From Marsupella aquatica (taxonomy: Eukaryota > Plantae > Marchantiophyta): a stretch of 64,000 nt of DNA. Positions 15,030 to 63,272 of this stretch are shown in pieces. Within the stretch, counting starts at the first letter, position 1, and each line of letters starts with the position of its first letter. A program made the position numbers and the translations under genes. Below the pieces are notes generated by a model. It was not told the DNA's origin. It saw only the letters and a list, made by a program, of their open reading frames with translations, and made no database searches. Where the stretch lies: assembly GCA_973895155.1 (NCBI GenBank), contig OZ316897.1, positions 10,501,832 to 10,565,831 of the forward strand, in the 5' to 3' direction.

Positions 15030-16395
15030 GGGTAGCCTTAGTTAGGGCTGACTTTAGTTGTGGACTAGATTACTTAGTTAGGTTAACTATGTTGTGCATT
15101 GTATCTAAAGCAGTGTTTGTTTGGATAGAAGGAACTCAGGCTCATTGTTATATAGCAAGTTAACTAGAGACTCACTGATAAAGAGATCTTGTATTGTGAA
15201 GACTTGATACGGTGGTCGTCGATGGGCCTAGAGTACAATAAAGCTTTCGTGTGTTCCCGTGGACGTAGCCTCAGCTTAAGTGAACCATTTGTTTTTGTGT
15301 GTCGACTACTTGTGTATTGGATGATCAAGAGCTTGTCATTATGAATGTTATTTTTGGTCACCAATTGGTATTAAAGCATGCCTGGGAGGTGACGAATCAT
15401 AGGTTTTCATGACTGGGTTTGTGATGGGTTTTTTTGGCGTTCAATGTTGTGGGTTTTCCGGAGTTTTGTGGCATTAAACATGGAAATTATGGGCTTAGTG
15501 GATAGATAAGTACGAGGGTTTTCTGACGGTGCTTAGGAATCACTTATCATTATCCATGGTGTAGAGGAATCAAAGTTCTCATTACGAGTCTCATTATATA
15601 TTTTGGATTTTTGGTTGAGTTTTGTGTTCAACAATTTTTTGAAGGAGGGACCAAAGTACTTTTTTTGACAATGCAAGTTATGCGGCAAAGGAGCTGTTGC
15701 ATGTTATAGCTCAATGTGTTTACCAAGACAAGGTGATCATTTTGGTATCTGGTTTGCTGACATTTGTGTTGAGCATAGATGACATTCGCAACGACAAGCC
15801 CATGAACCATCCAACGCACAATAGTCAACACAGAGAGATACGTGGTTCACCTCCACATGAGGCTACGTCCACGGGAACACACAAGAGCTTTACTGCACTC
15901 TAGGCCAACATGCCATACTAAGCATCCACAGCATAAGCTCTCCCTATCTCTCAACTAGATCCGTAACAATGAGCCTAAGTTCCACCAGGGCTGGCTTCAG
16001 CCCTAGCTATATACACAACAACACTACCGCTAACATTAGCTAAGTCCTAACCCGAGTTAGCCTAACTATAGTTAGCTCATGAGTCACAAGACTAGAGCAA
16101 TATCTAACAATTTGTATAATTAACAAGTGCAACGCAACAAGCAAAAGAAGATATCTGGCTTTTTGATAGGCTATTGAGTTACCTGAACCAAGTTTCTTGT
16201 TGTTGTGTTTAACTTGGAGGAAGAACCGCGGAGTTTTGAGACTCAACAAACTAAGAGATTGCAGCAAGGCGGTTGGGTTGAGTCAGAGATTGGTACTTGA
16301 CTCGGAGAGAGTGATTCATGATGGATTTTGTTTTTGGCTGAGCTTGCAGATGATCGATGCCGGTGCAATTTGGTAACTTTTCCCGTCAATAGTCA
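15030..16395 (+). mobile_element. old, degenerate LTR element of the same family as 1-984, interrupted by a solo LTR
   Basis: ~15030-15363 resembles the reverse complement of the LTR (e.g. GTGTTCCCGTGGACGTAGCCTCA). It is followed by a decayed PBS, TGGTATTAAAGC-ATGCCTGGGAGGTGACG (from 15366). Internal sequence on both sides of the solo LTR is colinear with the reverse complement of 1-627. Outer boundaries are approximate. Confidence 0.75.
15767..16109 (-). mobile_element. solo LTR (343 bp) with 5-bp TSD
   Basis: Ends TGTTG...TAACA, flanked by ATTTG at 15762-15766 and 16110-16114; matches the LTR at 642-984. Confidence 0.92.
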
Positions 16396-18149
16396 ACACT
16401 TTTCTCAAGTAAAACAACAGCGCTTAAGGTTAATTAACCCAACAAACAAATTGTAAGGTTGAAATGGACAACATGACATCTCAAAATCACTGTTCATATA
16501 GCACACAGTACCCCAACACAAAGATATGTGATTCGACCCGTCTAGACTTTTTGGATTATTTGCTTGAGTTGAGAGGTACAAGAGTTTGGTAGACTCTCAA
16601 GTAAGAACCTCTGACTTGCATAAATTGTAGGGGCTGGTCTACATTTTATATGGACTCAAAATTTGGGGCTACAAAAAAACATAAAATCTTTAAAATACCT
16701 AGGTTTTCCACTTTAAAAATTTCTGAGTCGCATATGACAGAAGTTTGGTTTTCCTTTTTTAATTCCACATAAGATTAAATTCAAATATTTCCTAACTAAA
16801 GCTTGTTGTAATTTTATCAAAATTTTTTATAATTCTAATCAAAAAACTCAGTATAATGCTGGCTAGTTTGGTTGTATACCTTGTATTAAAAAAACCTATA
16901 TAATTAACTTTTGAGCAATTTTTTCCACATCACAACTTGTTCAGTTTATTTTTAGTTACATTTTTGGATTCCTTGCATGAGTCGAGGCATGAGTTGAGAT
17001 GTACAATAGTTTGCTACACTAAAAAATTTAACATGATCAATTAACATGATCAACTAACATGATCAAATAATTAAAACCTTGAGTTAAAAAAATAGGAATT
17101 GTGTACTTGGAGTAGACTAAAATGAAACTTAACATGATCAATTGGATGTAAGTAAAGTTATTACAAGATATCAGAAACTAGCCTCAATATAAGAAGGGGA
17201 GGTGCATACCCAAGCAGTTGTGAAAGCCAGTGCACAAAGAAAAGTAAACCCAAGAGAACCTACCACCGCTAATCAAAAGCCCTTTTAGAATTGGCTATCA
17301 AAAATCTTAGTAACTAGTGTGATCCAAAATATGTATTTTTTTAATTAATAACTAAATTTTTAGAAAAAGTAGAAGATAAAAAATTAAGTATGGTAAACTC
17401 AATCATGTTTATAAAATAATTATTATATAATATTTTTTTTATAAAGTAAAAATAGATAATACTCAAACTCATTTGATTGAAATATATAGGCAATATAAAA
17501 TTTTGCAGTCTGTGCTCATGAGTATGGTACCATTAAAAATTTTTTAAAAAATCATTTCACTTTCAAATGGAGTTTAATAGTCACATGTAATAGCTGAAAG
17601 AATATGTATGAAATTAAACTAGCCCCGACTACCCATTCTTTGAACATGAATAGCGTTGGGGAGTCACTACATGGAGGGTCATAAATCACATGCAAATGTT
17701 TGGATCATTTATGACCCCCTAAGCCACTTTATATAAATTTGTACTACAACAATCATGTGATGACATGTATGCATTTTGCAATTAAACAATCCTATATTAT
17801 TTTCATTGAAAAATTAATAAATCTTCTATCACAACCATTTAAATGGTCCTATACTTCGTTGTTCATGATATGTCACTTTCATAGAAATGACCCCTAAGAA
17901 TAGCGGAGAGAACAATAAAAATGTTATCAAAATATATTCTCTAGATTCATATTCTTTGAAGGTTAATGAAAAGGAAAAAAACCCATCCTTTTAATATATA
18001 GTCATATATAATATACCATCTATCTTTGTATGCATATACTTTTTCCTATGCACATGTATTGTGGTGGGGCCATAGTGCTCATTTTTTGAATATAAATACT
18101 TAAAAATTATCAAAAAAAGTTGAATGTATGGACATACATATATCATAGT

Positions 18150-19116: not shown

Positions 19117-19911
19117 TAAATAGAATTTATAATAAAATATACAAATAAAATATAGAAAAATATAAATTGGGGTCTTTTGACTTGTGAGCCTAGATGATAT
19201 GTGGGTAATTGATAAAGTGCTCAAATTGATAGTAAATAAACATCACTCGCCCTGAATCGCGGTTGACTTTGAGTTCGTGAGAAGTTCACCGTGAGTTTGG
19301 GAAAAAGGAGAGCGAGATTAAGGGCACCTTGCCAAGTTGTAATGCACGATCTGCAGCTGACGGAATAGAATATAGCTTACAGTCGCTGATCAGCTTCCGC
19401 TTTGAATGGGATTCTTTGTCTTGATCTTTAATTGTTTGGTGAGCTAGCTGGGCCCGTACCGACTCCATGCAGCCCAGCCACTGACGATCATGCACTCCAG
19501 TTGCTCTTAAGCTCGATTGAACCGAATTGTTCGCTCAATCACATGCGCTTCAATTCGTTAAATTGCCCAGAGCCTGGCTGCCATCGAGCATGATCGTGGT
19601 TCTCGATTACTGACCACCGTCATTTTATTCTCTGCTGGGTTGACATTCATCTAAATCGATCCAAAACGTACGTATGAGGTGAAGGGGCTTCATTGCCAGC
19701 GTTTCTCTGGTTCGTTGACATTGATTGTTCTACACCCAACCTGAGAGGGAAAGCCTGAGTTTCCTGCGCCCAGTAACACCTCTAAGCTAGTCACACTCTT
19801 CGATCGTCGACTGCTCACTCCTGCTGTCAAGGGAGAGTGAAGAAACGGGCTGGATCGGTTGATAGATTGAGCTTCCCCGAATCAGAATGTAATACACGCT
19901 CATCGAGCAAG

Positions 19912-22132
19912 ATGGGAAAGCTCGCATTCGTCTGTATGGTGTGCCTTATCGTCGCTGCTTCGTCGTTGACATTGTCCTGTGCTGCTCCGGCGCTGCCGCG
20001 TTCTTTGCCGCCAGGTACTGATTTACTCCGTAATTGTAAGTCATTTAGTATATATGAGAGCACTGGTACTGAAATTGTAAGTCAGGTCGTATTCAGCACT
20101 GGTACTGGTCGGGCCTTCAGATTTATACTTACTTTTGCGAGACAGAACTAAACAGACATGTAGAATCCTTACAACTCAGATTTCTGGCAGTCTAAATCGA
20201 GTGACCCTGTTTAATTAGGCAAGTAGAGTATTTTTGCTCTGCTTGTATTGGAGCGGTTTTTTGAATTCCAATGAAGATTAGACAATTTTCATGACTCAAG
20301 CTAGTGAAGGGGACTGAAGAATTCATTGGAATTCTATGAACCTGTTGTCCAAGATATCTTGACAGACAACCTCAAAGTGAATGCTCAGCAGAGCAGTCAA
20401 GCTACTCGGCCATTTAAGTCATATATATAGATTGCCTTCCTGGTCACTCAAACAAGTCCAGAAGCACTGTAATTATTAAAGATCTACATATCACCCTCAA
20501 GATTAGAAGTACAGTAGGTATCTCTTCGGAAATCTCAACAGGCATTTCCATTGCACTCCACAGCTGTGTTCGATACTCGGTGGGTTTTTATTGTATTGAA
20601 CATGGCGAAGTTATTGCTGTTTTGGAGATTTCCACGATATTGATACTCATCCCTAGCTCGCTGGCTAACTTGACCTTAGGGGCATGTTGTGAGTACAGAT
20701 CAGATCTCGGCATCAGAGACAACCACCAGCAAGCCGAATAAGGTGAATCATGCTACTGATTCGATTGTGGCGGAATCTGACGAAGAACTCACAAATTCCA
20801 ACTGGGAGGAACTTTCCGAAGTAAGTCCGTTTCCTTTAATACGTACGTACATTTTATCATGTCTCTGCATGCATGCATGTAACTTCGAGACCTTACTCCC
20901 GAGTTGGCCAACCCAATTTCGTGGAAGATCGAGTCGCCTTGGATCTGTCTACTACTCTAACGATTTTTCACGAGCCATCGGCGGGATAGTTTCATTGGAT
21001 ATCCAAGGCTGATATACCTACAGTCGTTCAATGAAGCCTAGCTTGTTCACATCAAGTGGAGATTGGCTCAGTGGTGGATCAATTTCAGTTCGAGCGAGAT
21101 ACCTACTAGACTCCTCATCAAGCCTGCCCGAGCTCTTATCCTCATCGAGTGGACGGGTATCATGAGTAATCACTATGAAGCCCGGAACGAGTCCGAGCTG
21201 ATGTGTCCTAATCTAATTATCTGTGTATTGGGTGATCGACTCAATGAGCGATATGCGTTCGATCGATCAGACAGTTCAATCAATTAGAACTTTACAGAAA
21301 GCCCTGGCTCTAGACATGCTACTTCATATTGTCCAGTTCATAGAAAGTGAGTAATCACGCAAGACCGATGGAAGATTGACGAAGGCTTCTATCTCATTTG
21401 CTTGACTGCAGTCCACGGAATTGGCCGTGTGCATGGACGGTGATGAAATCGGCACCGGGGAATTATCATTGAAAAAGCCTGAAGTTGAGAAATCTTGCCG
21501 TCGGATGCTGGGGGATGATTACGGGGGAGATTACGGGTCACCAGGAACCAACAAGAATCAAAAGGGTAAGATTCCAGTTCAGCCCTATTATCTTTAACGA
21601 GACACTTAACTAAGCTTCAATGATCACAGTTCACAGATATCCATTAGGCAGATAGAATCCGCCGTGAAATGTACAAATGTTGTGCCGGACAAATATTTGG
21701 GCTAGTCTGATTTGTGTACACTGTTTTAAATGAATTGGAGTATAAAATATAAAAATATCACTAGTACTGTAGTACAATGAGGGTAGAAATTTGAGATATC
21801 AGGTAAAGTTAAGACGTCATAAATGTAATGTGAAACAATACAGGCTGGCCTGACTCTATCAATAATACCGTGGATTAAGAACTTGTTACGAAAAAAATAC
21901 TATCAAATTTTTGGAAACATCCTCCCATATGACTCGATGTTAGTTACATAAGTGAACGCTAATATAGGAGAGGAAATGAACTGGAACATTCAAGTAAATT
22001 CAAGGTCTAGTTCAATTTTGAATGGTGAATTCTTTACTGGTGTTTACAGGTGACTACAACTACGACTATTCTTACAAGAAGAAGCCGGCCAAGAAGGGTA
22101 AAAACAACAAGAAGAGTTCCAAGAAGGATTAA
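19912..22132 (+). CDS. secreted tyrosine-sulfated-peptide-type precursor (PSK/PSY-like), 153 aa, 4 exons
   Basis: Exons 19912-20014, 20699-20820, 21412-21565, 22050-22132, all GT-AG and phase-consistent (462 nt). Product MGKLAFVCMVCLIVAASSLTLSCAAPALPRSLPPDQISASETTTSKPNKVNHATDSIVAESDEELTNSNWEELSESTELAVCMDGDEIGTGELSLKKPEVEKSCRRMLGDDYGGDYGSPGTNKNQKGDYNYDYSYKKKPAKKGKNNKKSSKKD: signal peptide, acidic proregion, C..C-RRML, four DY motifs. Confidence 0.75.
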
Positions 22133-23809
22133 GAAAGATTGATCCATTTCAAAGTATCTGAATGTGATCATGTCATCAAGTTGATAGGTTTGGGACACGA
22201 GACACCTTCCAAATTTAGTCCTCCCACTTTTGAACTTGGCTGGCTTTACAATGGATTTTGGAGGAGAATGTTTATAAACCTCCCTGCTTCAACGAATATG
22301 GTAGGTGCTAGTGTACACTCAGTCTGGGAACCAAGAAGTATCATGCATAAGTTGAAAAATGGAGCTAGTAGATACTATGCAGATAGTTCATATATTTACA
22401 CAAGGTAGCTTGTTGGATCACACAGAAGTTTAGGTGTGAGGAAATTTAGTAAGACCAGACTTGCATGTGAGTTGGCCTTAAGATAATTAAAGGTCCTGAG
22501 ATGCTTGGTTTGGTGGCAACTTTTTGTGACAAGAGAGATTTATTAATGGCTTAGTTTGTGCTGATCCTAAGGAGTATTTTTGGGATCGGAGGCCAACCTA
22601 TGTAGGACCAAATTCTTTCCACCCAAAAACTTCTAGCCTGCAATTTTCACAAAAGCCAAAATCTCAAACACTTGACTGTCTACATTTTATCCAGATCGAG
22701 TTGGTCTACTAGCTGGTTATTAATTTGTAGACATAAAGCTAGGGAGTTTTAGGGCCAAATAAATTTTAAAGGATAGATACATGTGATGGCTTTTAGTTTG
22801 TCCACTGGGACTGCAGACCTTGGAGTTAGCGTATAAATAACAAATTGGGGAAATGGACCATGGAGCAAACAGCAACTTACGCTAAATGGCCCAAAATCTT
22901 TGAGTCCACATGGTATGGACCGAATGAGGGACTAAATGGCAGAATGCTACTCAAATTTCTCATTAAAGTTTGTGTCTTTGTGTTGAGCTCATATTTACCT
23001 TAACATACAGAAGTATTAATGTTTAATTTGTGCTTGATAAAATAATTTGTTGTAGTTTATGTGATGGAATTCAAGGAAAAGGAAAGTAAGGAAAAAGAAA
23101 TACAATCTGATATTGTTGTCACACTTTTGATTCTGAATAATTGCATTCTGCTTTGTAGCTAGCAATAGTGAGATAGTTCATTCAAAGGAAAAATTGTATT
23201 TGAGGTTGCAACAACAGTATTTTAAGAACAGTCTAGCTATAGACTGGAATAGTTGAACAGAGTTCTTTGTCCAACATTGTGGTCCATCAGGGCTTCTTTT
23301 AATTTACCAGATAGATAGTTACAGACTCCATACCTACAATTCATTACTCTTAGATACATTTTTACACAACCGATTGTTCAAGTTGTCACTAATTTATGCA
23401 TGTTTCACCTGGCCATACGTATGCTGAAGTTTCTTGGACTTTCAATCATACCTGGAACTGAGCATTCTTAACATATAGAGGTGGTTATAAGGAAGGTTAT
23501 CAGTTTATTCTCTATGGTAAACCAACAATAAACTGGCGCTATGAGAATTTTAGATGGGGTGTATCGGGGGGTGTATAAACAGTCTTTCTTCGTTACTTGT
23601 AGACTCTTCAGATAGCCAAATGAGTATTTCAGAGATATCTGGCTAATAATTATATGACAATTCACGGACAACTCACGTTCCAATACAATGGACATGGAGG
23701 GAATGAAAGCCAACTGGATATTAGTTACAATTGCTGCTATGAGATGTGAAAAACTTTGACAAGCTGCACGTTTACTTAGCAAGAGTTAGGAATGAACACT
23801 GAAGTGGTC

Positions 23810-32700: not shown

Positions 32701-34097
32701 AAGGGAAGTATTGATCTTTGATGTGAATTATCAAGTAGTGCTGAGAAGACGGATTTCTAACTGTCTCCTTTCTTCCTCAACTTCTCTTTACTTGTCTTCG
32801 TACTAAATCATGGATCTGTTTTGCCACCAGTGGAAATCATGAGCGTGACTGGCCCTCCTCAGGCTCATATTACACCACGAGTGATTCTGGAGGGGAGTGT
32901 GGTGTTCCTTCTCAAACTCTCTTCAATATGCCCGCCAGAAATAGGGCAAACAACTGGTATGATTCTTAAGACCTCAGGAATTTCATCATGGCACTTTTTG
33001 TTTGAGAAGGTTATTTTAATTTCTTAAATAATCATGCATGTGGGCCTCTAGTCTCACTTTATTGGTAGTGTCGGACGAGGGACGGCGTACGTGCTTTCAA
33101 CGGTCAAGGAGATGGTAATATAACACAAGTTTCCTCACTGTAGTGTTTCAGTAAAATTGGCAATTGTACTAAAGTTTGTGCAATACTGTGCAGGTATGCA
33201 ACAGAATGGGGGATGTTCCATTTTTGCATTGCAAACTCGGAAATGGATTGGAGAGAAGGCACGGAGCAGTACAAATTTTTGGAGGAGTGCCTTGCATCAG
33301 TGGATAGGCAAAAGCAGCCATGGCTGATCTTCGTCGCCCATAGAGTGTTGGGGTATTCCTCTGGAGAATTTTATGCTTGGGAAGGGACATTCAATGAGCC
33401 AGGGGGGAGAGACGATCTGCAGAAGCTGTGGCAAAAGTACAAAGTAGACCTTGCGTTTTATGGCCATGTTCATAATTATGAGCGGACTTGCCCTATATAT
33501 CAGGTAAATTCTCATGCATAAGACATGTCGAATTGAAAAAGTATAAGAGGGTGTAAACAGAAAGCTCCTACAAATATCCTAAGGAACAATTCTCTGCCCA
33601 TTGCATATAATTTAATCATTATACGAGGAAGGCGATGTACCAGAGGACTCTCAGAAACTGGTTCGGGTTGACGGTTCCTTCAGTATAATTATATAGAGAA
33701 TTGTTTCTGACCATAGCCCTGGCCTCCATGTTAAATTTGATATATTGCTATGGAGTATTGATATTAGTTTTGGTTTCTGAACCAGAGCATCTGCGTAAGC
33801 CAAGAACGAGAGCACTACTCTGGTCAGTTTAATGCAACGATTCACGTAGTAGCTGGAGGTGGAGGTGCTGGGTTGGCTCTCTTTGCTCCCTTCAACACAT
33901 CATGGAGCTACTTTAAGGACTATGATTATGGTTTCACAAAGCTCACGGCATTTAATCATTCTTCCTTGCTGGTGGAGTACAAGAGAAGCGATGACGGGAA
34001 GGTGTATGACAAATTCTGGTTCACCAGAGACTATAAAGATGTTCTGGGGTGCGACAAGATGAATCTCTATTGTCCAGCATCGACATTAGCTACCTAG
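29713..34097 (+). CDS. purple acid phosphatase, nucleotide pyrophosphatase/phosphodiesterase (PAP1/PAP24/PAP27-type), ~616 aa, secreted
   Basis: Twelve exons: 29713-29874, 30079-30173, 30399-30474, 30753-30875, 31127-31219, 31496-31628, 31820-31901, 32071-32203, 32392-32597, 32831-32956, 33194-33503, 33786-34097 (1851 nt, open). Signal peptide; EQPLARIAI, DWIGVFSP, CTAPVKY, GWRDPG; metal-ligand motifs GDLG, GDLAY, GNHE, AHR, GHVH. Confidence 0.95.
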
Positions 34098-37115: not shown

Positions 37116-38210
37116 ATGGCTGCTGTTTCCTCTCCGTTCCTGGTCTATCCTTCGACGACAATAGAGAGAAGTAGAAGAAACAAGGGGAGGAAATGGAATC
37201 CGTCTTCGTGCTTCTCGGTCTCATCTCTTTATCTGAGCTCAAGCTTCGGCAGCAGAAGCAGAGGGGAAAATGTGCAGCAGCACTTTGGGGTGTGGACCAG
37301 TATAAGCTCATCGAGGCTGCCACCGTGCAGCAGGGCCTCTTCTATGGACCTCTCTTCACCGAGAAACTCGACGAGAGGAGATGAGTCTTTCAACAGGGGC
37401 ACCATTTTGGCAGAGTTGGACCACCTCTCTTCAGCGAAAGAGCAAAGCGGTGCAGCGCCAGACACATTAGTAAATCGATTTCAAATAGAGGATTCCACTC
37501 CAGAACAGTTGGCGTGGAAGGCACTTCAACGAGGCGCTGGGTTGGTTTTAGGGTTGGCCATCATAGCATGTACGTGTCTGCCCAATGCCGCGCACTCTCT
37601 GGCAGAGAACTCTATTGGTGCGTCAAGTCTCGGCCTCAAAGTGGCCAATTTCTTACGAGGATCTGGATTGTCTGATGAGCTGGTCGTTGTCATTGTGGGA
37701 ATGCTACCTGTTTTGGAGCTCCGTGGAGCTATTCCTGTCAGCTACTGGATGAAGATGGAGCCTGTCAAGGGCTATTTTCTTTCGATCTTGGGAAACATGA
37801 TACCGGTTCCATTCATTGTGCTCTACTTGGATAAGATACTGAAAACTGTAGGAGAAAAGGGGGAAAGTGGTCAAAATCTTGTGCGTTGGATTGTGGACCG
37901 AACGCGGAAGCAAGCTGGCCCCATTGAGGAATTTCAATGGTTGGGATTGCTGTTGTTTGTGGCTGTTCCACTTCCCGGAACCGGTGCTTGGTCAGGTGCA
38001 ATAGCTGCCTCGATATTGGGGATGCCTTTTTGGGATGCCGTGACTGCCAACCTTGGCGGTGTGTTGGTAGCTGGTCTGTTGGTGACCCTTCTGGTCACAG
38101 TAGGCACTAAGGAGGCAGTCCTCGTTGGCATCGCCTTGTTTGTGAGTTCGTGTTTCCTGTGGAGTGTACTGAGGTTGTTTCAAAAGAAGAAAGGCTCATC
38201 CTCCTCGTGA
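37116..38210 (+). CDS. putative small multidrug export family membrane protein (COG2426 / Sm_multidrug_ex), probable plastid transit peptide, 364 aa, intronless
   Basis: Single ORF. Family motifs LPVLELRGAIP, GNMIPVPFI, LFVAVPLPGTGAWSG; several hydrophobic helices; Ser/Arg-rich N-terminus. Confidence 0.9.
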   Translation: MAAVSSPFLVYPSTTIERSRRNKGRKWNPSSCFSVSSLYLSSSFGSRSRGENVQQHFGVWTSISSSRLPPCSRASSMDLSSPRNSTRGDESFNRGTILAELDHLSSAKEQSGAAPDTLVNRFQIEDSTPEQLAWKALQRGAGLVLGLAIIACTCLPNAAHSLAENSIGASSLGLKVANFLRGSGLSDELVVVIVGMLPVLELRGAIPVSYWMKMEPVKGYFLSILGNMIPVPFIVLYLDKILKTVGEKGESGQNLVRWIVDRTRKQAGPIEEFQWLGLLLFVAVPLPGTGAWSGAIAASILGMPFWDAVTANLGGVLVAGLLVTLLVTVGTKEAVLVGIALFVSSCFLWSVLRLFQKKKGSSSS

Positions 38211-42224: not shown

Positions 42225-45200
42225 ATGGACCATATGAACGTCCAAGAGTTGAGCAAGACCAGCATCAGGGCCCTTTTTACTACTCGGTCCAAATCAGCAG
42301 GAGCACTGGGTCCATCTGTCCCGTGCTCCGATGGAATAGTACAACTAGGAGTGGTACTGGTACTTTTTTCCTTTCTGCCTTCTGCGGACAGCTTCTCAAG
42401 CTCGTGTGTGGAGCTCCGCAAAGGTGCTGTTGCAGAGCATACCATCCAGGCCGGAGGACAGAAATTCACCTGCCTTCACGACGGGTCAGCCCCCGGAAAT
42501 CAAAACAGCGATGGTGGTGGCAGTGAAAGCAGCTGGAGCTGCATAGATCTAGAAGCGTCAACGCCCAGGAAGCCGTTCTTTCTGCAATCGGGCTCCCACC
42601 ATGGACCGGACGTGGTGCCGTGTCCATCTTCACTAAATAGAAAGATTAAGGAGCCTGGCCTCAGTGACAAATTGAGAACGAGGAAACATGGACAGGACTG
42701 GGTGTTTGTCGATATAGAAACCAAGTGCGCCAAAGTGCCGCAAAACTTGTCGACAGCGAGCTCCTCAAAATTCACATTGGATCAGCAGAAATTGCCGGTG
42801 GAAGTAGCCTCTTTGCCATACAGATGCAATAGCACACTATCAGCACCAACGACGACAGAGACCTCAGCATCAGCATCTGAAACGAGAGAATCAACCGATT
42901 CGGCGACAGACTCGTTCCATTTTCGCGTAAAATTCACAACTCCAAAAGCTTCATTGCACCAAATTCTGGAAGAACTCGAGGAACACCTCCAGACGGCCAT
43001 TTGCGACGGCGACGGCGCGCAGTTCGAGGCCGGGAGACGACTGACGGTGAGGCGATCGCTCCTAACCAGGGCCTGGAAGCCGGTTATCGTCATAGACTCG
43101 GTCATTGTAATCATCGGGTTCGTACTCGCGGTGTCGGCGTTGTCGTGCTGGGTTAGGCAACAAGGGGTACTTTACAAGTCGGATACCGATATTGCAGTGC
43201 CCGTGATTACGCCGTCGAACCCTCTTGTCAGCCTCGTCCCGGGCAGCGATCAGAGTCGCTCGGGCAGGCGGTCGCCGGTGGAAGAGGGCTCGGGCAGGTG
43301 GGAAACGGCCGAAGCAGAGGGTCGGGTCAGAGAGCCGGACCTAGAAGGCGGGCAGGGCAGGAGGGGCACCGACGAGTATTTATCGTCAGACACGGGCAGA
43401 TGCTCGCACCGCGAAGAGGGGCCGGGCAGGTGGGAAAGGGCAGAAAATGACGGTCGGGCAAGAAAACCGGAAGAGGCAGAAGAAACCCGAACGGGCAAGC
43501 AGCAATGTCCGGGAAGAGGGGCGCCAGGGGGGAGCGAAGGGTCTGGGGTGAACGCCCCCGAGGCAGGGGGCGATACGACGACGGGGCAGACGGCCCGGTA
43601 TCGGGCGGAACCATTTTGCTTGGAGAGCTTGGCGACGGCAACGGGGGACTTCGACGAGAGCAACAAGTTGGGAGCAGGGAGCTTTGGTACCGTGTACCGT
43701 GGAGTATTGCGCGATGGGAGGTGAGTCGCAACTCATGATCGATGAACGAGTTAATTCTTTTGCGTTTGGGTCTTCCTGTCGATTCATTCTTGCCCTGCAG
43801 TTTGCCTATAGGTATGGTTTAGGTTTATTGTCTCTTCAATTTGCCTATAGGAAGGGTTTAGGTTATGGGGTATTCATTTCTTTTCTTTCCAGCCATCACT
43901 GGCTAATAAGTATAAAGTTTTTTTTATTGTATTTAGTGAAATACTTTAAAAAATTTGTTGAAAAACATTAAGGTTATTTTCATTCAATTTTGAAAATTAC
44001 AAAAATCATAAAGTTTTTTTAAATCAGATTGTGAAATATTTAGGGGTAAAAATATTAGTTAAGAAAATTTTATTCCTTAAATTTTAGGGTGTTTATTGCC
44101 CCAAAACTTTGTGCGTGATATGAAGCACCCCTTAGATTGAGGCCCCCAAGGTTTAGGTTTATTTGTCTTTTCTTTTTGGTCTTTTCTTTGTTTACTTTGG
44201 CCTGTGAGGTCAGGTCTCGGAGTTTGGGATCATGTCTCCAGGTTTGGGGTTTCTACTTTTTGGCAGTTTGAAATATATAATATACTAATCTTGACCTCTT
44301 CCTTTGAGAAAGAATCAATGTGAGTCTTGATTTACCATTGCATTCCCCATTTAAACTGCCACTGTCCCAAAAGCAAAAGAGTATGTATCCAGGTTACCCA
44401 AAATTAGTCAATAATGTTCTTGAAAAGCCAGTGTCCACCAGGTTGAGGAATACAAAATAATGCCATTTTTTTTGCTTAGGGGACAGGGGCAGTTCAAGTA
44501 AAAAACCTCACTGTTCCCAGAGCAACACTATTCCCCTAATTAGTCAATAATTTTCTTAAGTAACAAAGAACACTATTCCCAATTTAAAACTGGTGTATGC
44601 AGATTGCCAAAATTAGTGGATAATGTTATTTAATAAAAGTGCACTATTTTGTCATCCCCTAACCTTATGGACATTGGCGATTTAAGCAGACCTATCCCAC
44701 ACCTGTGGCAGCACGCACATTTAGAATATATTAAGAAGGAAACAAGTCACCAAAGTTTATATACGAGGAAAAAAACCAAGTACAATGAAAGGCAAGAAAA
44801 AGTGGTCCAACGAAAACGAGGTCCAACGAGGTCAAGAGCATTATTGACTAATTATGGTAACCAAGCTCTACCAGGTCTTGCTTGGAATATGGATTCCGTG
44901 AGGGGCTGTGTTCCGGACGCTATGAGAAAGTTGAGTGGGGATACTCCAACAGTCCTGACATTTGATCGAACCATGTTGTGTTATTGATGAGGGTCCTATG
45001 ATTTTTAAGCATGCCTGGACAATATAATTGTAGGTCTCATGTTTGAAGACAAGTGTAAAATTTCTGCATGTATTGTCACAATTGTGCAGGGTGGTTGCAA
45101 TCAAACGGGCGGATAGTAATAATAAAATGCTGAAGATGGTGGACAAGCAATGTGCCTTCAAGGCGGAATTGGACGTGATGTCACGACTCCACCACAAACA

Positions 45201-49502: not shown

Positions 49503-52500
49503 CTATGAACTCTCCTGCATGACAATGGGACGACATAGCAAATGCATTGATTAATCAACAAAGTACACTAGTACCTAATCCAATGGTTCAATATTCCTGT
49601 AATTCTTTTTAGTGTCTGGGGGACATCCTAATTGTTTCCAGTATTCTGGGAAAGTTTCCTATTATCTTGAACCTTTTTTCCCCTGAGTCTTCGTTGGCGA
49701 AAATTGTCACATATTATGCAAAAGATCCCAACTTTCCAAGTGAAATTTCTGATTCTGTTGTTGGTCAATAAAGGTCTCCTTTTATCCTACATTTCTTGAA
49801 CAGATTTTATCACCTACAGCACATGATAGACATGTCTAGTTTTTCAGTATTCGTCTTTCTATGCCTAAGAAAATGCAAGATCGATTATCGCATGAGAAAT
49901 TTATTTCTAGACCCGATGGAAGAGACCCTTAGTAAATCACATGCCCAGGGCTTCCAACCCCAAATTAAATTCATAATTCTTGAACGTTGCTATCTATCAC
50001 TCAAGCCCAAAGAAGCACTAGACTGGGAGTAGTGAATATATGTACCTGCGGACTTTCTAAGTGGCTTGGCAGCAAAGGCTCATGCACGGAAGTTGATTCA
50101 GCTGATTGAGCTATTCGATCTAGAGCTTTGTCAGCCTGAAACCCAATTCAGAACTGACCTGTAAGCCAAAATTCATCGTTGCACCCTTTTGCAGTCAAGA
50201 GAACGAGATTACATCGTAAAGAACAAGCTAATCCGTCCGAATGAAAGGCACAACTTGGAGGCAAGATTTCCACTAGTTCACTCCAAAAGGGAACACGGGC
50301 AACATCATGAATTCAAGCTGATGATCAAGACACTTACCATTCTTCTCCAATTGGTGCATGAAACTAGAGTGAGTACACAAGATGTTTGCACGAAAACAGC
50401 AAGCACTAGTCCCATCACCACACCCTGCAAGGCAAGAATCGAATCGTTCCAATTCACTTAAATGACCACAAACAAGGGAGTAAATCAGCAATTCTGTCAA
50501 CCATATTACCACATAAGAGCTCACTGTAGGAACCTTTTCATCCTAAGATCTAATTTGTGAGACCATCATACAAGGAGACACTGAGAAGAAGGTAGACGCA
50601 CAGTATTAGTGGGGTGTCTTAGAAATTCCTCATTTTTTAGAATTCATACCTTGCCATTGAGGTGGAGCCAAAAGGCTAAAGACAGACAAGTCGGAATTCC
50701 AATAACATAGTAGGCTGTCAAGTTGATTGCTGCACCAAAAGTTTGTTTTCCACAACCTCTTATCACACCTATGCCAAGTCATTACAGACAGCACCAATGC
50801 ATTTCGTTAGTAATTGTTAAGAAAAACAGACCAATTTTACTGGACGTGAGAGCAAATTATGTAGTGTACACTTAAGGTGTTTCCAGTCCCACTTATAGAC
50901 AAACTAGATATTTTGCATCAGTTGTACCTTCTGTGAAATGACGAGTTCTGAAACCTTCCGTTAGTAAAGTGTCATGAAGACAATTTTAACTCCCAACCAG
51001 CCAACATTTGGGTAAAATCCCCGTTGCAGTTGATTCGTTTTAGTTTATGATCAAATGGACCCTATCACTAGATCTGAGACTGGTGAGCAGAAAAAAGCTT
51101 CATTTCTTGACCACTGATGCCGAGTACACATCGATAAAAACTCCAGTTGAAGGCCGGTGAAGTCATAATCACCTGAGCCCACATATTGAATGGCGTCCAT
51201 GAGACTAAGGCAAGCCAGAAACGGTGTCACTTCAGCCACATAATCTAAAACTTCTTCCGCGTTGGTGAAGGCATGTCCCCAGAAATGGCGAGAAAGCATC
51301 AAGGCCACGAAAACAACGCAACCATCAAGGATTGCAAGACCGAAAACCGCTTTCACCGCTAGCTTCGCTGCTTCGGGCCGATTAGCTCCAAGCTCGTTTG
51401 AAACTCTTATACTGCACACAAAAGTACCACAAAAGAAAGGCTTTTGGTGTTCATTTACTCTCACTCCGAATCATTCACGTGGTACGTGTAAGCACAGAAC
51501 GCGTCATCAACATTTCGCAAAGTCATTCAGATACAGAATGATGGAGAAGCAATCAACTTGCTTCCATAGACTTTTGGCCCATATGTAAGCATAAGCACTC
51601 TTCGCATGGCAGTCTAAGCACATATGCTCCTATTTCTCCCAATTTGTTACTAGCTTCTCTTCTTCCCAAGAGGACACCCAAGCGCCTCTGCTCCTATTGC
51701 TCCCAATTCGTTACTAGCTTTTCTTTCTTCCCAAAAGGACATCTAAGGAAGCATCTCCAGTCAGCCCAGCGTGTCATCCTAAGTTAAATGAGGGATTATT
51801 TTACCAATAAAGGAGGGATCCCCTTAGTGAGGGATCAATTTATGAAAGAAACTTCGAATCATCCATCCCAGTTTCTCACTCTCTGTTCACAAAGAAAGAC
51901 CAGGATGAAATCGTTCAATTTAAGAACAAATTATTAGTTCGGCAAGCTAGGAATCGCCTACCTGGCTGCCACGCAGAGGCCCAAGGGGATCATGTCCAGG
52001 AGATTGACAGTGTTGAAAGAGATCGTAAGTAGCGACACCTCAAGGCTAGGCTTCGGCAGCAGCCCCGACGAGAGCACTAGCAGCTCAAACGACCACCACT
52101 CGAAGCAGATCATCACCACGCCGGGCACCGCCAAGCTCAAATAGATTTTGATCGACCCAACCGCATCTCGGATCGAAAAACCGCCCCAACATTTACCTGC
52201 AAATTCCACGCCAATATAAATATCCAGTGACAATTTATTCCTCTCTCCTCAATTTATTGCGATAATAGAATGAGGGCTGGCCTAATGCAGTACCTTAGTT
52301 GAAGAACACATGTCAAGCACTGAAAATCCAAAGACTAGTCTCAATCATCCTAAGTTTGTACAGTGAACCGTGTCTAAGTCTACCTTCTCCGGAAGAAGGC
52401 TTAGTCTGCACTTATGCACAGAATGCACTGCCACTACTGCAATGTTCTCGATAATGCACTTACAAAGATAACTGTATTCGGCCACAATGCAGTTTCTGAC

Positions 52501-54504
52501 GAGTGCATTGTCCTTTTATCAAACAAGTGTAAAAAAATGCTAGTGACAGTTTGGCAGCCTCGTTCCCCTGCCTTATAGAAATTCTCGTACAACCGCTGTT
52601 CAGATGTTTAAGTGCATTTTTACGTCTATGTGAAAAGAACTTTCTCGTATCCGTTAAGGCCCGTCGTATACAATTTGCACCTGTCCATCCCTGTATGTAC
52701 TTATCCATGGAAATGCACGTGTCCTACCTTGGAAGATATCTCTAACTATCAACGAAAAAGATAGTAAACTCACCACACTTCCCTGAAAAAATCGTATAGC
52801 ACAAAAGGAGAATGACCAGAGAACAATATGAGGTCGTCGTCGCCAGTGCCCCACCAGTGAACCCGAACCCCAGCACGTGAATGTACCCATAGCAGACGAA
52901 CGGATGAAGAATCGCCATGATGAGAGAGGTGATCATCATTGGCATGACGATTGACTGCGTTTGGAGAAATTTGATGAGCGGGATACTGAATGCGGAGGCG
53001 AACAAGCCAGGCGACATGCAGCGGAGGTATAAGCCAGCAAGGCGGGAGATTTGGGGATCTTGTCCCACCGCCAAAAGGATTGTCTCCATGTTGAACCAGA
53101 TGATGAAAATTGGGACGAGGGCGGAGGTTGTCACCAAGATGGAGGACTGGAGGTATACTCCCAGCAGGTGGTACCGCTTTGCCCCGTATGCTTGCCCGCA
53201 TAGCGTCTCCATCCCCGTCGCCAGGCCTGTCTATATCAGACGAGAAATGGAAGCAAGGCACACAGCTCATCTCATCAATACCCATGAAGAAGTTAAAATT
53301 CTAAGATTGTGTACTTTGTATATAAGTGCTTGCTATATATATATAGGACCTGCGTCCGAGTGATGTCATGTATCCTAAGTCTTCTCCAACACGCATATCT
53401 CTTATGGAGGATTGTCGAACAACTACACTGCTCCTCTATAATCCATGATAATCTCTACTCTTTCTCTAAAAGGTTTTCTGCCAAGACCACGGATAGGGCT
53501 CTGCTCTTGCTTTAATAATGAAGTTTTCTCCAAGAATTTGTTTGGGGAATTTGGGATCTCTCTGCTCTAAGTCTAAAAAGTTTCCTGTCAACAGTATGGA
53601 TGGAGGAAGAAGTCTAAGAAGGGGATCTTGTACCCCTGCTTGTACCTCTCACCGGGGCCTTGCTTCGATCTGTGATAAAATCCTCTAAGTATCCAGGATA
53701 AAGGCTCCGAATCCATTATTAATAAGACCCAGACGCCCGACTCTACGAGGCATGAATAATTTAACCTTCAAAAGCCCATCTAAAGGTCGAGAGGGTTATT
53801 AGCTAGTAAGTACGGTCCAAGTATTAACTAAGCCTTCCCTGAAGAAAAATGCATGACTTCCCGGTCACTCCTAGGAACCCGGCTCCAACATTCATTCACG
53901 AAGATAAAGCCCACTGCTATACAATCCAAGGAATGAAAGTCTCACAAAGATGGAGAGACAACTGAACATAAGGAGGGAGAGAGGAACATGATCGAGAAAA
54001 TTTCAAGGTCATCAGCCAGGAGAGAAGCCTGGAAATGGTGAGAGAAGACAGTGTACAACGAACTTCACCACGAGAGAAACTAAAGATGAGGCAGGCAAAA
54101 CAATATAATCTAATATCCATTGGAACAATTCAGGAGCCACAGAGTGTTGGGATGCAATTACATACCATTAAAGAGAAGCCAGAAACTACAGCGACGGAAT
54201 TGGCCAACGAGACGCTGGAAAGCTCGACCTCACCCAAGTGACCCACGAACATGATGGAGATGACGACGATAGAGTACGATAGTACGTTGGCAACTATAAT
54301 CGGCCAGGCCAGACCACATTGCAACTTGACTTCCGCGAGCACTCTGCTACCTCCTTCACCTCCTCGTCGACTTTCACCGGTTTTCCTAACTATGCCTCCT
54401 GAACCGTTCCGATCTTCATTTGCTCTCGAATTCTCCTCCTCCCTCTCCCTGACCACTCCACGGAATTCGGGCGATCCATTCTGTGCTCCGTGTTCCGCAG
54501 CCAT
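49503..54504 (-). CDS. MATE/DTX efflux transporter, copy 1, 525 aa
   Basis: Exons 54504-54166, 53230-52774, 52196-51962, 51411-51173, 50768-50650, 50424-50338, 50135-50046, 49514-49503 (1578 nt). Motifs FVGHLGEVELS, ETLCGQAYGAK, KFLQTQ, CFEWWSFE, SIRVSNELGANRP, GVIRGCG, NLTAYYVIGIP. Confidence 0.93.
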
Positions 54505-55480
54505 ATCTTTCCAGCCACTCTAGACCCTGGACCTGGAATGTTTCCACCTACGCTAATCCCAGCTGCAAGCTGACGATCGAACCTTTCCGCCAAAACAGTT
54601 CGAGCTCCTCTGCGAATCTGTTCAATGCATTCATTAGATTTTCATCACCAATGATTTCAAAATTTGTTGCTCGGGTAGACACCATCAAAAGAGCGTTCAA
54701 TCTGATAACAATCTGATGAGATTGAAACATTAATAAAATTTCCTGAACAGTTGCACCTTCAAAAGCCTCAATGTAACGACGAGTATTAGCTAGTATGCTA
54801 GTAAGCTAGCCACCATTGGACAGCAAGTGGCACTGTATAACATTCTTCACCAATTTGCACAAAAACGTGCACCTAATTCAGCGAATCTCGCCTCCTCATC
54901 CGTGTCGAGAGAAGAGTCTTCACCCTCTTAGTATGCTCTATGTAGAGCGAACAGAAACTAGGAATGCGGAAAATTTCGAATGATCTCCATTAAACCCCGT
55001 CTTCCCATCATCACGGACAGATTGAATAGCCACAAGCACGAACAGAAACCGCAGGGCTACATAATTATTCCACTCCATCCCATCAGCTGCATGAAGGGTT
55101 GGACTTAGCTGGTTAAGACCACAAAAAATTTTCAGAGAATTTGCGGACAACTAAGCATTGAAGGTGCATGTGCGATTTGTTACTTCTGACACATGATTAC
55201 TGAGATTCCAATGGTCGAGCATCGAACTCACTTTTGGGACTGTCTAGCTGTTGGTGTCATCAAGCTTTCAGCACCGTCGTTGAAAGGAGGATTTGTTGAT
55301 ATATTCGAACTGCGAAGGCCATCAAGATTTTTCCTTTGCTCTGCGAGGACCTATGTTCACGAAAGAATTCAGGTGGCACGACTCTACAGTCCTCTGTCAT
55401 CTATTATTACTTAAGGAAACCACTATGTGGTCTGTCATCTCTTGGTGAAGAAAACCAGTGTGTGGTACAACTATTCACGA

Positions 55481-57031: not shown

Positions 57032-60000
57032 CTATGAGCTCTCCTGCATGACAAGAGGACCACATAGCAAAAGCACTTATTAGTTAACAAAATCAGAATT
57101 TCAAGGAATTAAAAAATCAGAAGTACATTAGGAAAATCCATCTAATCAAACGGTTCAGTATTCCTGCAATTCTTTTAGTGTTTAGGGAAATCCCAGTGTT
57201 TAGGGGAAATCCCAATTGTTTTCAGTATTATGGGGAAAGTCTTCTAACATTTTCAATCTTTATTCTCGTCAATCTTTTTGTTGCCTTGAAAGTATTCTGG
57301 TGAGTCTTTGTTGGGAAAAAATGTCACAAATTATAAAACAGATCCCAACTTCCCGAGTGAAATTTCTGACTCTATTGTTGGTCAATAAATTCTCCTCTTA
57401 CCTACCTCTCTTGGACACATTCTATCACCTAGAGCACATGATAGACGGTCAAAATTTTCAGCGTTATGTCTTTCCATGCCTAAGACAATCATGCAAAATA
57501 GTTTATCTCATGAAAATTGGTTTTTCTACACACAACGAAATTTTTGTCTACATGTGATGAAAGAGCCTAGTAAATCACATGCGAAGGGCTTCCAGCCCCA
57601 AATGAAATCATCATTCTTGAACGTTGCGTTCCAATCCGTCACTCAAGCCCATAAGATGCACTGGACTAGGAGTAGTAAATCTATGTACCTGCGGCCTTTC
57701 TGAGTGGCTTGGCAGCAAAGGCTCATGCACGGAAGTTGTTTCAGCTGATTGAGCTATAATTCGATCTAGAGCTTTGTCAGCCTGAACCCAATTCAGAACT
57801 GAACTGTTAGCAAAAGCTCATCTTTGACCCCTTTTTTTGTCAAGAGAAGGAGATTGCGAAGTAAAGAACAAGCCAATACTTCCGAATGTGAGAGAACGAT
57901 TTGAAGGCAATTTTCCACTAGTTCATGCCTAGTGGGAACGAGGGGCCAATATCATGAAATCAAGCAGATGATCAAGACACTAACCATTCTTGTCCAATTG
58001 GTACATGAAATTAGAGTGAGTACACACGAAGTTTGCACGAAAATAGCAAGGACTAGTCCCATCACCAAACCCTGCAAGGCAAAGAATCGAGTTGTTCCAA
58101 TTCACTTAAATAACCATAAACAACAGAGTAAGTCAGCGACTCCGTCAACCTAAATGATCAGATAAGAGCTCATTCTAGGAACCTTTTCATCGTACGATCT
58201 ACACTAGTTTGTGAGTACATCATAAAAGGGAGACACTGAGATGAACGGCAGACTCACAGCAACGGTCTAGTTTCTCATCACTTCGACACTGCTTTACATT
58301 CATACCTTGCCATTGAGCTGGAGCCAGAAGGCTAAAGACAGACAAGTCGGAATTCCAAGAACATAGTAGGCTGTCAAGTTGATTGCTGCACCAAGAGCTT
58401 GATTTCCACAACCTCTTATCACACCTATGCCAAAATCATTACCAATACGTTTCGTCAACAATAGTTAAAAAAAGCAGACCAATTTAGTGGGCGTGAGAGC
58501 AAATCATGTATCGAAAAATGAAGGTGTTTCCAATCCTAATTACAGACAAACCAGATATCATGCTTCAGTCGTACCACTATGAAATGATGACTTCTGACAA
58601 TGACATTCCTTTAGGAAAGTGCCTTGAAGAGAATTTTAACTCCCAACCAGCCAACGTTTTGGTAACATCCTCAGTCTCATCAGTTGATTCGTTTTACTTT
58701 ATGATCAAATGGACCCTATCACTAGATCTGAGACTTGTGAGCAGAAAAAACGCTTCATTTTCTTGACCACAGATGCCGAGTACACATACATAAAAAATCC
58801 AGTTGAAGCGCTGTGAAATCGTAATTACCTGAGCCCACATATTGAATGGCGTCCATGAGAGTAAGGCAAGCCAGAAATGGTGTCACTTCAGCCACATAAT
58901 CTAAAACTTCTTCCACATTGGTGAAGGCATTTCCCCAGAAGTGACGAGAAAGCATCAAGGCCACGAAAACAACACAACCATCAAGGATTGCAAGACCGAA
59001 AACCACTTTCACCGCTAGCTTTGCTGCTTCGGGCCGATTAGCTCCAAGCTCGTTTGAGACTCTAATACTGCACACAAATGAAAGGGATCTGGTGTTCATT
59101 AACTCTCACTGAGCAGCAGCATTCAATTGCTACACATAAGTCAAGAATGCATCATCAACATTTCTCAAATACAGATCGAGAAGCAATCAACTTGCGTTCC
59201 ATAGACTTTTTGCCCATATGTGAGCTTAAAGCACTCTTCGCATGGCACTCTAAGCACATATGTTCCCATTTCTCCCAATTCGTTACTAGCTTCTCTCCAT
59301 CCCAAGAGCACATCCAAGCAAATATCTGCTCAAATTTCTCCCACTTTGTTACTAGCTTTCCTTTCGTCTCAAGAGGACATCCAAACAAACATTTCCAGTC
59401 AGCCCAGCTTGTCATCCTAAATACATGAGGGATGATTCTTCCAATGAAGGAGGGATCTCCTGAGCAAGGCATCGATTCATGAAAGAAACTTTGAAATAAT
59501 CCTTCCCAGTTTCTCACTCTCTGCTCACAACGAAAGACGACGAAAATATTGCTCAATTTAGGTACAAGTAGTTCGGCAGCGGGAAGAAATCACCTACCTA
59601 GCTGCCACGCAGAGGCCCAAGGGGATCATGTCCGTGAGATTGACAGTGTTCAAAGAGATCGTGAGTAGCGACAGCTCAAGGCTAGGCTTCGGAAGCAGCC
59701 CCGATGCGAGCACTATCAGCTCAAACGACCACCACTCGAAGCAGATCATCACCACGCTGGGCACCGCCAAGCTCAAATAGATTTTGACCGATCCAACTGC
59801 ATCCCGAATTGAGATACCGCCCCAACATTGGCCTGCGAGTCCACTCCAATACAAATATCCAGTGACAATTCATTCCTCCGTCCTCAATTTATTGCGATCA
59901 TGGAATGAGGGCCCAATGCAGTACCTTAGTTGAAGAACAGATGTCATGCAAGGACACTTAAAACTCTAAAGTCGAGTCTCAATCATCCTAAGTTTGTACA

Positions 60001-63192: not shown

Positions 63193-63213
63193 GCCACGTC
63201 AGACAGCACGTGG
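63193..63213. promoter_or_regulatory. paired ABRE/G-box-like ACGT elements upstream of MATE copy 2
   Basis: GCCACGTC (GACGTGGC on the gene strand) and CACGTGG 6 bp apart, ~360 bp upstream of the ATG; a further CACGTG at 63043-63048. Confidence 0.45.
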
Positions 63214-63272
63214 TATTGTATAAAATTCGTGACCAATTTGCACAAAAACCTGCACACAATTCAACGAATACC

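Follow-up and report, generated by a model that had tools for sequence, protein, structure and literature searches.

The Marsupella aquatica locus at positions 19912-22132 of the window (the whole 64-kb stretch of DNA analysed here) is probably a small gene, predicted to encode a secreted protein and absent from the annotation. In this study, we tentatively read it as an unannotated, lineage-restricted liverwort gene, with a probability of roughly 0.45. Its predicted product is a precursor-like, secreted and largely unstructured small protein that is possibly a substrate of TPST. Tyrosine-sulfated precursors in plants are laid out as a signal peptide, an acidic propeptide, R-R-x-L and Asp-Tyr motifs (PMC6698702, PMC7913133). 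The candidate precursor runs from a signal-peptide-like start through an acidic middle to C-RRML, GDDYGGDYGSPGTNKNQK-G-DYNYDYSY and a lysine-rich tail. [quoted passage not shown] If the gene is real, it would stand for a DY-peptide lineage of its own and rank alongside the moss-specific PSY-like peptides.

Gene model and coding signals

An earlier note on this DNA had proposed four phase-consistent GT-AG exons encoding 153 aa. We read the DNA and translated each exon, and the model was reproduced exactly. As shown in Table 1, the exons total 462 nt, corresponding to 153 codons and the stop in phase, with codons split as g/at (Asp35) and g/gt (Gly127), and all three introns have GT..AG borders. 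The region is rich in such dinucleotides, with 158 GT and 188 AG counted in the 2.7 kb around the locus, so phase consistency by itself is cheap. The model takes two of the four GTAAG donors found at 19700-22400, those of exons 2 and 3. In the same interval, the acceptors of exons 3 and 4 were the two best-looking, that of exon 3 being the best of all. The acceptor of exon 2 follows a weak pyrimidine tract, and splicing at the neighbouring acceptor (20680) would disrupt the frame. For intron 1, an alternative donor GTAAGT at 20036 is in phase with that at 20015; its use would lengthen the protein by 7 residues. If intron 3 were retained, the frame would end 10 codons on, as ...KGKIPVQPYYL and a stop.

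Table 1. Exons, introns and sequence motifs of the predicted gene, with positions in the window.
Feature	Positions	Strand	Details
Exon 1	19912-20014	+	103 nt; good ATG context (caagATGg); 34 residues and first base of codon 35; G+C 0.58
Intron 1	20015-20698	+	GTACTG...TACAG; G+C 0.40
Exon 2	20699-20820	+	122 nt; part of acidic Ser/Thr-rich propeptide, 9 acidic and 2 basic of 40 residues; donor GAA/GTAAGT; G+C 0.47
Intron 2	20821-21411	+	GTAAGT...TGCAG; G+C 0.45
Exon 3	21412-21565	+	154 nt; Cys82, acidic stretch, Cys104, RRML, DY motifs; GTAAG donor; G+C 0.51
Cys104	21496-21498	+	Exon 3, directly before RRML
RRML	21499-21510	+	Exon 3
12-nt in-frame tandem duplication	21510-21537	+	Period 12, 2.2 copies, 93% matches
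GDDYGGDY	21511-21534	+	Exon 3
PSY-resembling DYGSPGTNKNQK	21529-21564	+	Exon 3; begins with Asp-Tyr
Intron 3	21566-22049	+	GTAAGA...TTTACAG; G+C 0.34
Exon 4	22050-22132	+	83 nt; DYNYDYSY, Lys-rich tail, stop; G+C 0.40
DYNYDYSY	22052-22075	+	Exon 4
Lys-rich tail	22076-22129	+	Lys at 10 of 18 residues
TAA stop	22130-22132	+	Exon 4

Codon position 1 was G-rich and position 2 A-rich in the model exons. With a codon-usage model trained on only 1339 codons, the score was highest in the model frame for all four exons. Among the 1098 open frames of the window, exon 1 ranked in the top 2.7%, exon 2 in the top 2.2% and exon 3 in the top 3.6%; exon 4 was in the top 15%, which is not distinctive. The antisense frame over exon 1 outscored exon 1 itself. 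The two frames share their third codon positions, so that the excess of synonymous variants in exon 1 (see below) does not settle which strand is coding. A minus-strand gene was rejected as an alternative, because neither coherent exons nor a Pfam match were found on the minus strand over the locus. Rfam gave no match on either strand of the locus.

The locus was also compared with that of a close relative (organism B). Among 40 of 118 substitutions listed, nine fell in exons, five synonymous and four non-synonymous; under neutrality, 22% would be expected to be synonymous, and the observed proportion (5/9) gives p of about 0.03 among the substitutions listed. All four non-synonymous variants lie upstream of RRML, and among the variants listed for this near-identical relative, none of either kind was found after RRML. 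No exon indel occurred among 12 of 46 indels listed. Substitution density was not lower in the exons, with 9 in 462 nt versus 31 in 2439 nt outside among those listed. The codon usage, the contrast in G+C between exons and introns, the use of the strongest splice sites and the ratio of synonymous to non-synonymous variants together give modest but consistent support for a real gene, no single one of them being decisive.

Predicted precursor and known peptide families

The predicted N-terminus consists of an MGK n-region and a hydrophobic core (Kyte-Doolittle hydropathy up to 3.3 over residues 4-14), followed by SCA/AP with small residues at -3 and -1, as judged by a heuristic only. The propeptide contains 16 acidic and 5 basic residues. 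Cys82 and Cys104, which had both been placed before RRML, are present 21 residues apart, and only Cys104 directly adjoins the site. The translations confirmed that all six Tyr are downstream of RRML and that four are preceded by Asp, one of these as DDY. The same region contains 12 Lys versus 6 Asp and two Pro, one each in DYGSPG and in the KKKPA of the tail; HN is absent from it. DY is scarce in the window (114 per 128,000 six-frame positions), and of the three most closely spaced DY pairs in the whole 64 kb, two fall in adjacent exons of the model. Both DY of exon 3 result from the in-frame 12-nt tandem duplication. Since the locus was picked for its motifs among very many windows, these motifs are not independent evidence. 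Exon 4 resembles a sequence derived from an AAG microsatellite.

PSY peptides share the motif DYxxxx[AP]NxxHxP, and 31 of 32 aligned sequences retain its DY, N, H and P (Tost et al. 2021, PMC7913133). AtPSY1 is printed as DYGDPSANPKH (PMC8462819). The earlier note correctly gave the matches to it as D1, Y2, G3, P5 and N8, with H11 replaced by Q, which amounts to 5 of 11 positions. The candidate resembles PSY (AtPSY1, DYGDPSANPKHDPGVPPS; moss PpPSY1, DYEKPCANKKHDPSVCKNG) in its secreted precursor, the DY start, Gly3, Pro5 and Asn8 as in AtPSY1, and an R-x-x-L site upstream, as in AtPSY1-5 (PMC7913133). However, it has T, Q and G at positions 7, 11 and 13 in place of the conserved [AP], His and Pro, keeping only D, Y and N of the motif, whereas moss PpPSY1 retains A-N-x-x-H-x-P (PMC13618415). 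The candidate also carries three additional DY/xY tyrosines and a Lys-rich tail, and its 153 aa exceed the usual length of PSY precursors, the median in the moss PSYL family being about 110 aa. HMMER and word-index searches gave no match connecting it to PSY precursors. Moss PSYL peptides show that DY peptides confined to bryophytes can approach the PSY motif without fitting it; they come from unannotated or misannotated loci. Such peptides, outside canonical PSY and specific to bryophytes, exist and are active. They differ from the candidate in having DYD..NH.P-type motifs and relatives, which come from about 20 moss species and a single liverwort, and they are expressed and bioassayed (Lyapina et al., 10.1101/2024.05.13.593875).

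In the Marchantia peptide MpPSK, the core is YIYTSQ, and the bryophyte form is YIYT(S)Q (PMC8462819). Like PSK precursors (Pfam PF06404; AtPSK4, RRSLVL/HTDYIYTQ), the candidate has a predicted signal peptide and an acidic region, and its two Cys and R-R-x-L ahead of D-Y-x-Y may be a further resemblance. It differs in having DYNYDYSY in place of YIYTQ, and in a DYxY located 27 residues beyond RRML on a different exon. The translations of the four exons contained no YIYT, the closest motif being DYNYDYSY. The Cys spacing of PSK precursors also appears to be unlike that of the candidate, in which a 21-residue gap ends in a Cys abutting RR. The Pfam search proposed for the PSK model was run exon by exon at E<=10 and returned no family, PSK included. 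The general sulfopeptide-precursor layout that had been proposed for the locus agrees with published precursors (PMC6698702, PMC7913133). The proposed link to the PSK and PSY families is not supported, given the blank Pfam result, the absence of YIYTQ, the Cys spacing and the residues at PSY positions 7, 11 and 13. The idea of one composite precursor that joins PSK to PSY is therefore speculative, and the plausible gene model beneath it is itself predicted.

CLE18 carries CLE and CLEL motifs on one precursor. Several candidate mature peptides per precursor also occur in OsPSY7, with four PSY copies (PMC7913133); OsPSY7 and CLE18 contain recognisable family motifs, whereas the candidate has two micro-duplicated DY clusters. 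In its maturation logic, the locus would fit RGF/GLV/CLEL best. RGF-type maturation involves Golgi cleavage by S1P/SBT6.1 at RRxL, sulfation by TPST at DY and trimming by the Asp-dependent SBT3.8 (PMC7913133, PMC7162652). Query patterns were DY with a Pro-rich core ending in H-N for RGF, which in Marchantia is DYAEPDTHPPESN, and PxPPLxxPxPF for CIF (PMC8462819). Neither pattern was found in the candidate, which differs from RGF in lacking the Pro-rich core and the C-terminal H-N.

Searches and alternative readings

Genes for short peptides often escape sequence-similarity searches. Four public runs contained the locus; all were genomic DNA contigs, two of them Hi-C-like, and the splice joints were absent from them. 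When exon 3 was searched with HMMER among 1.84 billion representatives, six matches were obtained, none of them a homologue. These were long or repetitive proteins with scores summed over repeats, and the two inspected (P0001 and P0002) were judged chance. Word-index searches found no match for the 63-aa open frame of exon 3 or for the 107-aa open frame around exon 2 (residues 1-44 scored), the latter among candidate proteins of 59-187 aa. In a metagenome scan, 393 pattern matches to exon 3 peptides were obtained with none confirmed, and a degenerate DYNYDYSYK pattern had no match. In the ESM atlas, the best score for exon 3 was 0.78, beneath the tool's lead level, and a "PSY3-like" plant cluster was among the top three neighbours at only this score. 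No paralogue of the model was found within the 64-kb window. Calypogeia fissa shared one gene with the window, with different neighbours, so that synteny did not lead to the orthologous place. An exact look-up showed that three long ORFs of the window were absent from the protein collection; the proteome of the source genome is therefore outside it, and no self-match is to be expected. For this reason, the lack of homologues in this collection is weak evidence.

A real rival, somewhat less probable than the preferred reading, is that the locus contains no gene. The exons would then be a chance chain of open frames and common GT and AG dinucleotides in intergenic DNA, with a GC-rich hydrophobic frame read as the "signal peptide" and the 12-nt duplication, ACTAC and AAG repeats giving the DY and Lys motifs. 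In-phase chains are easily built at the observed density of GT and AG, the motifs derive from tandem micro-repeats, and the locus was selected visually in a very large scan. The lack of homologues, the purely genomic runs, the absence of a codon signal in exon 4 and exons no better conserved than introns among the variants listed also fit this explanation. It does not readily account for three exons that each independently reach the top 2-4% of codon usage in the model frame, or for G+C that rises in exons and falls in introns. The frame also needs exactly both GTAAG donors after exon 1 and the two best acceptors, and the variants listed show a synonymous excess with zero exon indels.

If the gene is real, its product may still have no signalling role, and we consider this improbable. 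Such a product could be a secreted Tyr-/Lys-rich protein, a cationic peptide cleaved from an acidic propeptide, which is the classical layout of antimicrobial peptide precursors, or a wall-binding protein with cross-linking Tyr. The Lys excess after RRML, the acidic propeptide and the lack of any known sulfopeptide motif are consistent with it, and to our knowledge the sulfated hormones known so far have no Lys-rich tail. Pfam, HMMER and the ESM atlas, however, gave no similarity to antimicrobial or wall protein families, and a cross-linking or antimicrobial role does not predict Asp before four of the six Tyr, which is a TPST determinant (PMC6698702). A highly diverged true PSY (or PSK) member, perceived by a liverwort orthologue of the PSY receptor, is more doubtful still. 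The five matches to AtPSY1, the C...C-RRxL ahead of DY as in PSK precursors and the atlas neighbour, a lead at best, point in this direction. Against it stand the residues at positions 7, 11 and 13, which PSY sequences (PMC7913133) and moss PpPSY1 (PMC13618415) conserve, as well as the missing PSK match and YIYTQ. Moreover, canonical PSY and PSK candidates have already been reported for Marchantia (PMC8462819), so that this gene is not needed in liverworts for that role.

Proposed processing and significance

Plant TPST needs Asp before Tyr and acidic residues nearby (PMC6698702), and liverworts possess TPST (PMC8462819). In the candidate, Asp directly precedes Tyr four times, with acidic residues nearby. 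SBT6.1 cleaves RGF6 at RRLR/RRAL, SBT1.1 cleaves PSK4 at RRSLVL/HTDY and SBT3.8 cleaves at DY (PMC7913133). For the preferred reading of a lineage-restricted precursor gene, we infer the following course in all its steps. On entry into the ER, the signal peptide would be removed, with a predicted cut after SCA. In the Golgi, TPST would sulfate some or all of the four Asp-preceded Tyr, and an S1P/SBT6.1-type subtilase would cleave the precursor at RRML. Asp-directed or other subtilases may then trim it to one or more peptides starting with DY. The Lys-rich tail would be removed, or may help the product bind to the acidic cell wall.

A bolder proposal, which we hold to be a long shot, is that leafy liverworts possess a family of signalling peptides peculiar to them, sulfated at several tyrosines and distinct from PSK, PSY, RGF and CIF. 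These would be cut from an acidic precursor at RRxL, and two DY-x-x-DY clusters would give one molecule as many as four sulfotyrosines. In early land plants, they would be ligands of a new class, acting on sulfopeptide receptor kinases.

The set of sulfated peptide hormones in the first land plants is still unsettled. One survey identified candidates for both PSY and PSK in Marchantia as well as Physcomitrium (PMC8462819). A second survey recovered none before seed plants and blamed short, fast-evolving precursors (PMC13074997). Loss of TPST in a moss causes severe developmental defects that are rescued by PSY (10.1101/2025.11.07.687175). At present, the locus amounts to one gene model, as yet unreplicated, and has the value of a candidate rather than a finding. 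If true, a lineage-specific DY-peptide gene in a leafy liverwort would add to the evidence that bryophyte sulfopeptides have been missed by annotation pipelines.

The four-exon model and its predicted protein

The earlier note had described a hidden four-exon gene for a composite sulfopeptide precursor with Asp-Tyr (DY) motifs. The region 19500-22600 was read again with every exon translated in its own frame, and the chain was reproduced exactly, confirming both exons and motifs as described. The exons total 462 nt, giving 153 codons and a TAA. The introns begin with GTACTG, GTAAGT, and GTAAGA, all three end in CAG, and the codons of Asp35 and Gly127 are split. The N-terminus is MGKLAFVCMVCLIVAASSLTLSCA/AP. 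The propeptide is rich in Ser/Thr and acidic residues (16 acidic versus 5 basic from the signal peptide to RRML, the R-R-x-L site in exon 3). Cys82 and Cys104 were both found, with RRML directly after Cys104, followed by GDDYGGDYGSPGTNKNQK-G-DYNYDYSY; the C-terminal end is KKKPAKKGKNNKKSSKKD. In the exon translations, all six Tyr residues lie downstream of RRML, and four are preceded by Asp. A minimal uORF (ATG then TAA), 20 nt upstream of the candidate ATG, would be relevant only if it lies within the 5' leader.

Coordinates of the candidate gene and other features of the window
Feature	Position	Strand	Length
Candidate exon 1	19912-20014	+	103 nt
Candidate exon 2	20699-20820	+	122 nt
Candidate exon 3	21412-21565	+	154 nt
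Candidate exon 4	22050-22132	+	83 nt
Minimal uORF	19887-19892	+	
Antisense open frame across exon 1	19830-20081	-	
AT-rich stretch	16001-18000		
Third DY-rich open frame	33918-34034	+	
Sm_multidrug_ex (PF06695) gene	37116-38210	+	
Long open frame	42225-43724	+	499 aa
Duplication, first copy	50000-55444		
Duplication, second copy	57642-63995		
ORF in first copy	52770-53285	-	171 aa
ORF in second copy	60346-60861	-	171 aa

Splice sites, codon usage and variants

The in-phase chain alone is weak evidence, because 158 GT and 188 AG occur in 2.7 kb. Since the locus was picked for its DY motifs, these are no independent evidence of a real gene. Six-frame translation of the window contains 114 DY in about 128,000 positions, and two of the three tightest pairs are DYGGDY (exon 3) and DYNYDY (exon 4), on the same strand and 520 nt apart. 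Both derive from small in-frame repeats: a 12-nt tandem duplication in exon 3, and ACTAC- and AAG-repeat-like sequence in exon 4 (AAG 9 versus AAA 1). The third DY-rich open frame (DYDYGFTKLT...FTRDY) resembles part of an ordinary folded-protein exon.

Splice sites, G+C content, codon usage, and the variants of a close relative, all hard for a reader to preselect, agree on a gene, each modestly. Only four GTAAG donors occur in 19700-22400, and two of them are the exon 2 and exon 3 donors. The others lie just downstream of exon 1; that at 20036 shares the phase of the proposed exon 1 donor, and its use would add seven residues. Of six pyrimidine-rich acceptors in this region, those of exons 3 and 4 look best, and the exon 2 acceptor is weak. 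G+C was 0.58, 0.47, 0.51, and 0.40 in exons 1-4 and 0.40, 0.45, and 0.34 in introns 1-3. The codons are G-rich at position 1 and A-rich at position 2. Codon-usage log-likelihood, trained on 1339 codons from four long window ORFs, peaked in the model frame for all four exons. Ranked against 1098 open frames of 90-240 nt in the window, exons 1, 2, and 3 fell in the top 2.7%, 2.2%, and 3.6%; exon 4 was undistinguished (15%).

By this crude codon model, the antisense open frame across exon 1 had the highest local score (13.6 bits), above exon 1 itself. Exon 1 alone leaves the strand unfixed, because the two frames share third codon positions. The antisense frame lacks a donor-like site and matched no Pfam family, the minus strand over the locus gave no coherent gene model or Pfam match, and an Rfam search of the locus found no match. 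No second copy was found within the window, where the locus is single-copy.

Contigs of the close relative (organism B) contained 74-79% of sampled 31-mers. Among the variants listed (40 of 118 substitution sites and 12 of 46 indels), nine substitutions were exonic, five synonymous and four non-synonymous; 5/9 compares with 22% synonymous sites (p about 0.03). The amino-acid changes among them, L21S, P26R, H52D, and L79S, all lie upstream of RRML, and all 12 indels lie in introns or flanks. Listed substitutions were no less frequent in exons than outside. Two haplotype-like contig sets of organism B cross 19600-22500.

The locus is present in just four public runs, drawn from two studies, with no RNA run recorded among them. 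Their contigs over 19600-22500 are genomic, introns included, and no contig joint in these genomic, non-RNA runs matched an intron. In two of them (X2 and X3), contigs break at GATC and then run into unrelated sequence, the pattern expected of Hi-C libraries.

Surroundings and searches for relatives

The window is liverwort nuclear DNA. Its Sm_multidrug_ex gene, a well conserved single exon, is 67% identical to that of Calypogeia fissa and 61% identical, across 58% of the length, to that of Marchantia polymorpha; identity to moss proteins is lower. In C. fissa the gene is flanked by dyskerin and DUF819, neither of which occurs in the window, so local synteny is not preserved; the 10-kb flanks differ apart from the shared gene, and no orthologous place was located in C. 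fissa. Within the window, G+C peaks (0.52) where the 499-aa open frame lies; this frame matched no Pfam family. The tandem segmental duplication (about 5.5-6.4 kb, 81-83% identity) carries an ORF in each copy; the first, the one of the two scanned, matched no Pfam family. An AT-rich stretch (G+C 0.32) lies upstream of the candidate.

Similarity searches were performed exon by exon. Pfam matched no family to any exon at E<=10, the PSK model included. Against 1.84 billion representatives, exon 3 gave six matches, all long or repetitive proteins with scores summed over repeats; on inspection, the top two proved to be chance matches. Word-index searches found nothing with the open frame that naturally surrounds exon 2 (candidates of 59-187 aa, scoring restricted to exon residues) or with the exon 3 open frame, and two metagenome scans found no relative. 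In a language-model atlas, the three clusters nearest to exon 3 were small and from Streptophyta, one being 'PSY3-like', at a score (0.78) often reached by shuffled sequences. Three long window ORFs had no exact match in a 15-billion-protein collection, so the genome's own proteome is absent from it. These blank searches say little either way: peptide precursors change rapidly, and even a conserved membrane protein shares only 67% identity with its counterpart in the nearest proteome of the collection.

Comparison with tyrosine-sulfated peptides

For PSY, the published motif reads DYxxxx[AP]NxxHxP, and 31/32 sequences conserve its DY, N, H, and P (PMC7913133); moss PpPSY1, DYEKPCANKKHDPSVCKNG, keeps it (PMC13618415). 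The candidate peptide, DYGSPGTNKNQKG, departs from it at T7, Q11, and G13. Its claimed likeness to AtPSY1 is real as 5/11 identity, but the shared residues are DY together with G, P, and N within a Gly/Asn-rich stretch where several DY anchors are possible. Compared with PSK, the candidate lacks YIYTQ and, exon by exon, a Pfam match, and appears to differ in Cys spacing, sharing only a C-RRxL-...-DYxY flavour; the Marchantia PSK candidate is YIYTSQ (PMC8462819). The PSK-PSY link proposed in the earlier note is not supported. The Pro-rich cores of RGF and CIF are also lacking, as is the H-N end of RGF.

Common to the candidate and these families is a general precursor logic: signal peptide, acidic propeptide, Asp before Tyr, and R-R-x-L. 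The sulfotransferase TPST requires Asp before Tyr (PMC6698702). SBT6.1/S1P cuts RGF6 at R-R-x-L-type sites (RRLR, RRAL), and R-R-x-L precedes DY in PSK4 (RRSLVL/HTDY) (PMC7913133). Precedents exist for bryophyte-only DY peptides missing the PSY motif (moss PSYL; 10.1101/2024.05.13.593875) and for a multi-copy precursor (OsPSY7; PMC7913133).

These results suggest that some such gene exists at the locus, at a probability of about 0.6-0.7. A chance chain of open frames with no gene would fit the abundance of GT and AG and the unreduced exonic substitution; it is a serious but less likely rival given the agreement of splice sites, composition, codon usage, and variants. A real gene could instead yield a secreted Tyr/Lys-rich or cationic product with no hormone role; this would suit the Lys-rich tail, and is improbable given that Asp precedes four of the six Tyr. 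A true but diverged PSY or PSK member, to which the 5/11 identity points, is very unlikely in view of T7, Q11, and G13 and the missing YIYTQ. The predicted gene may tentatively, at somewhat short of even odds, encode a secreted protein resembling a TPST-type precursor, with the features described.
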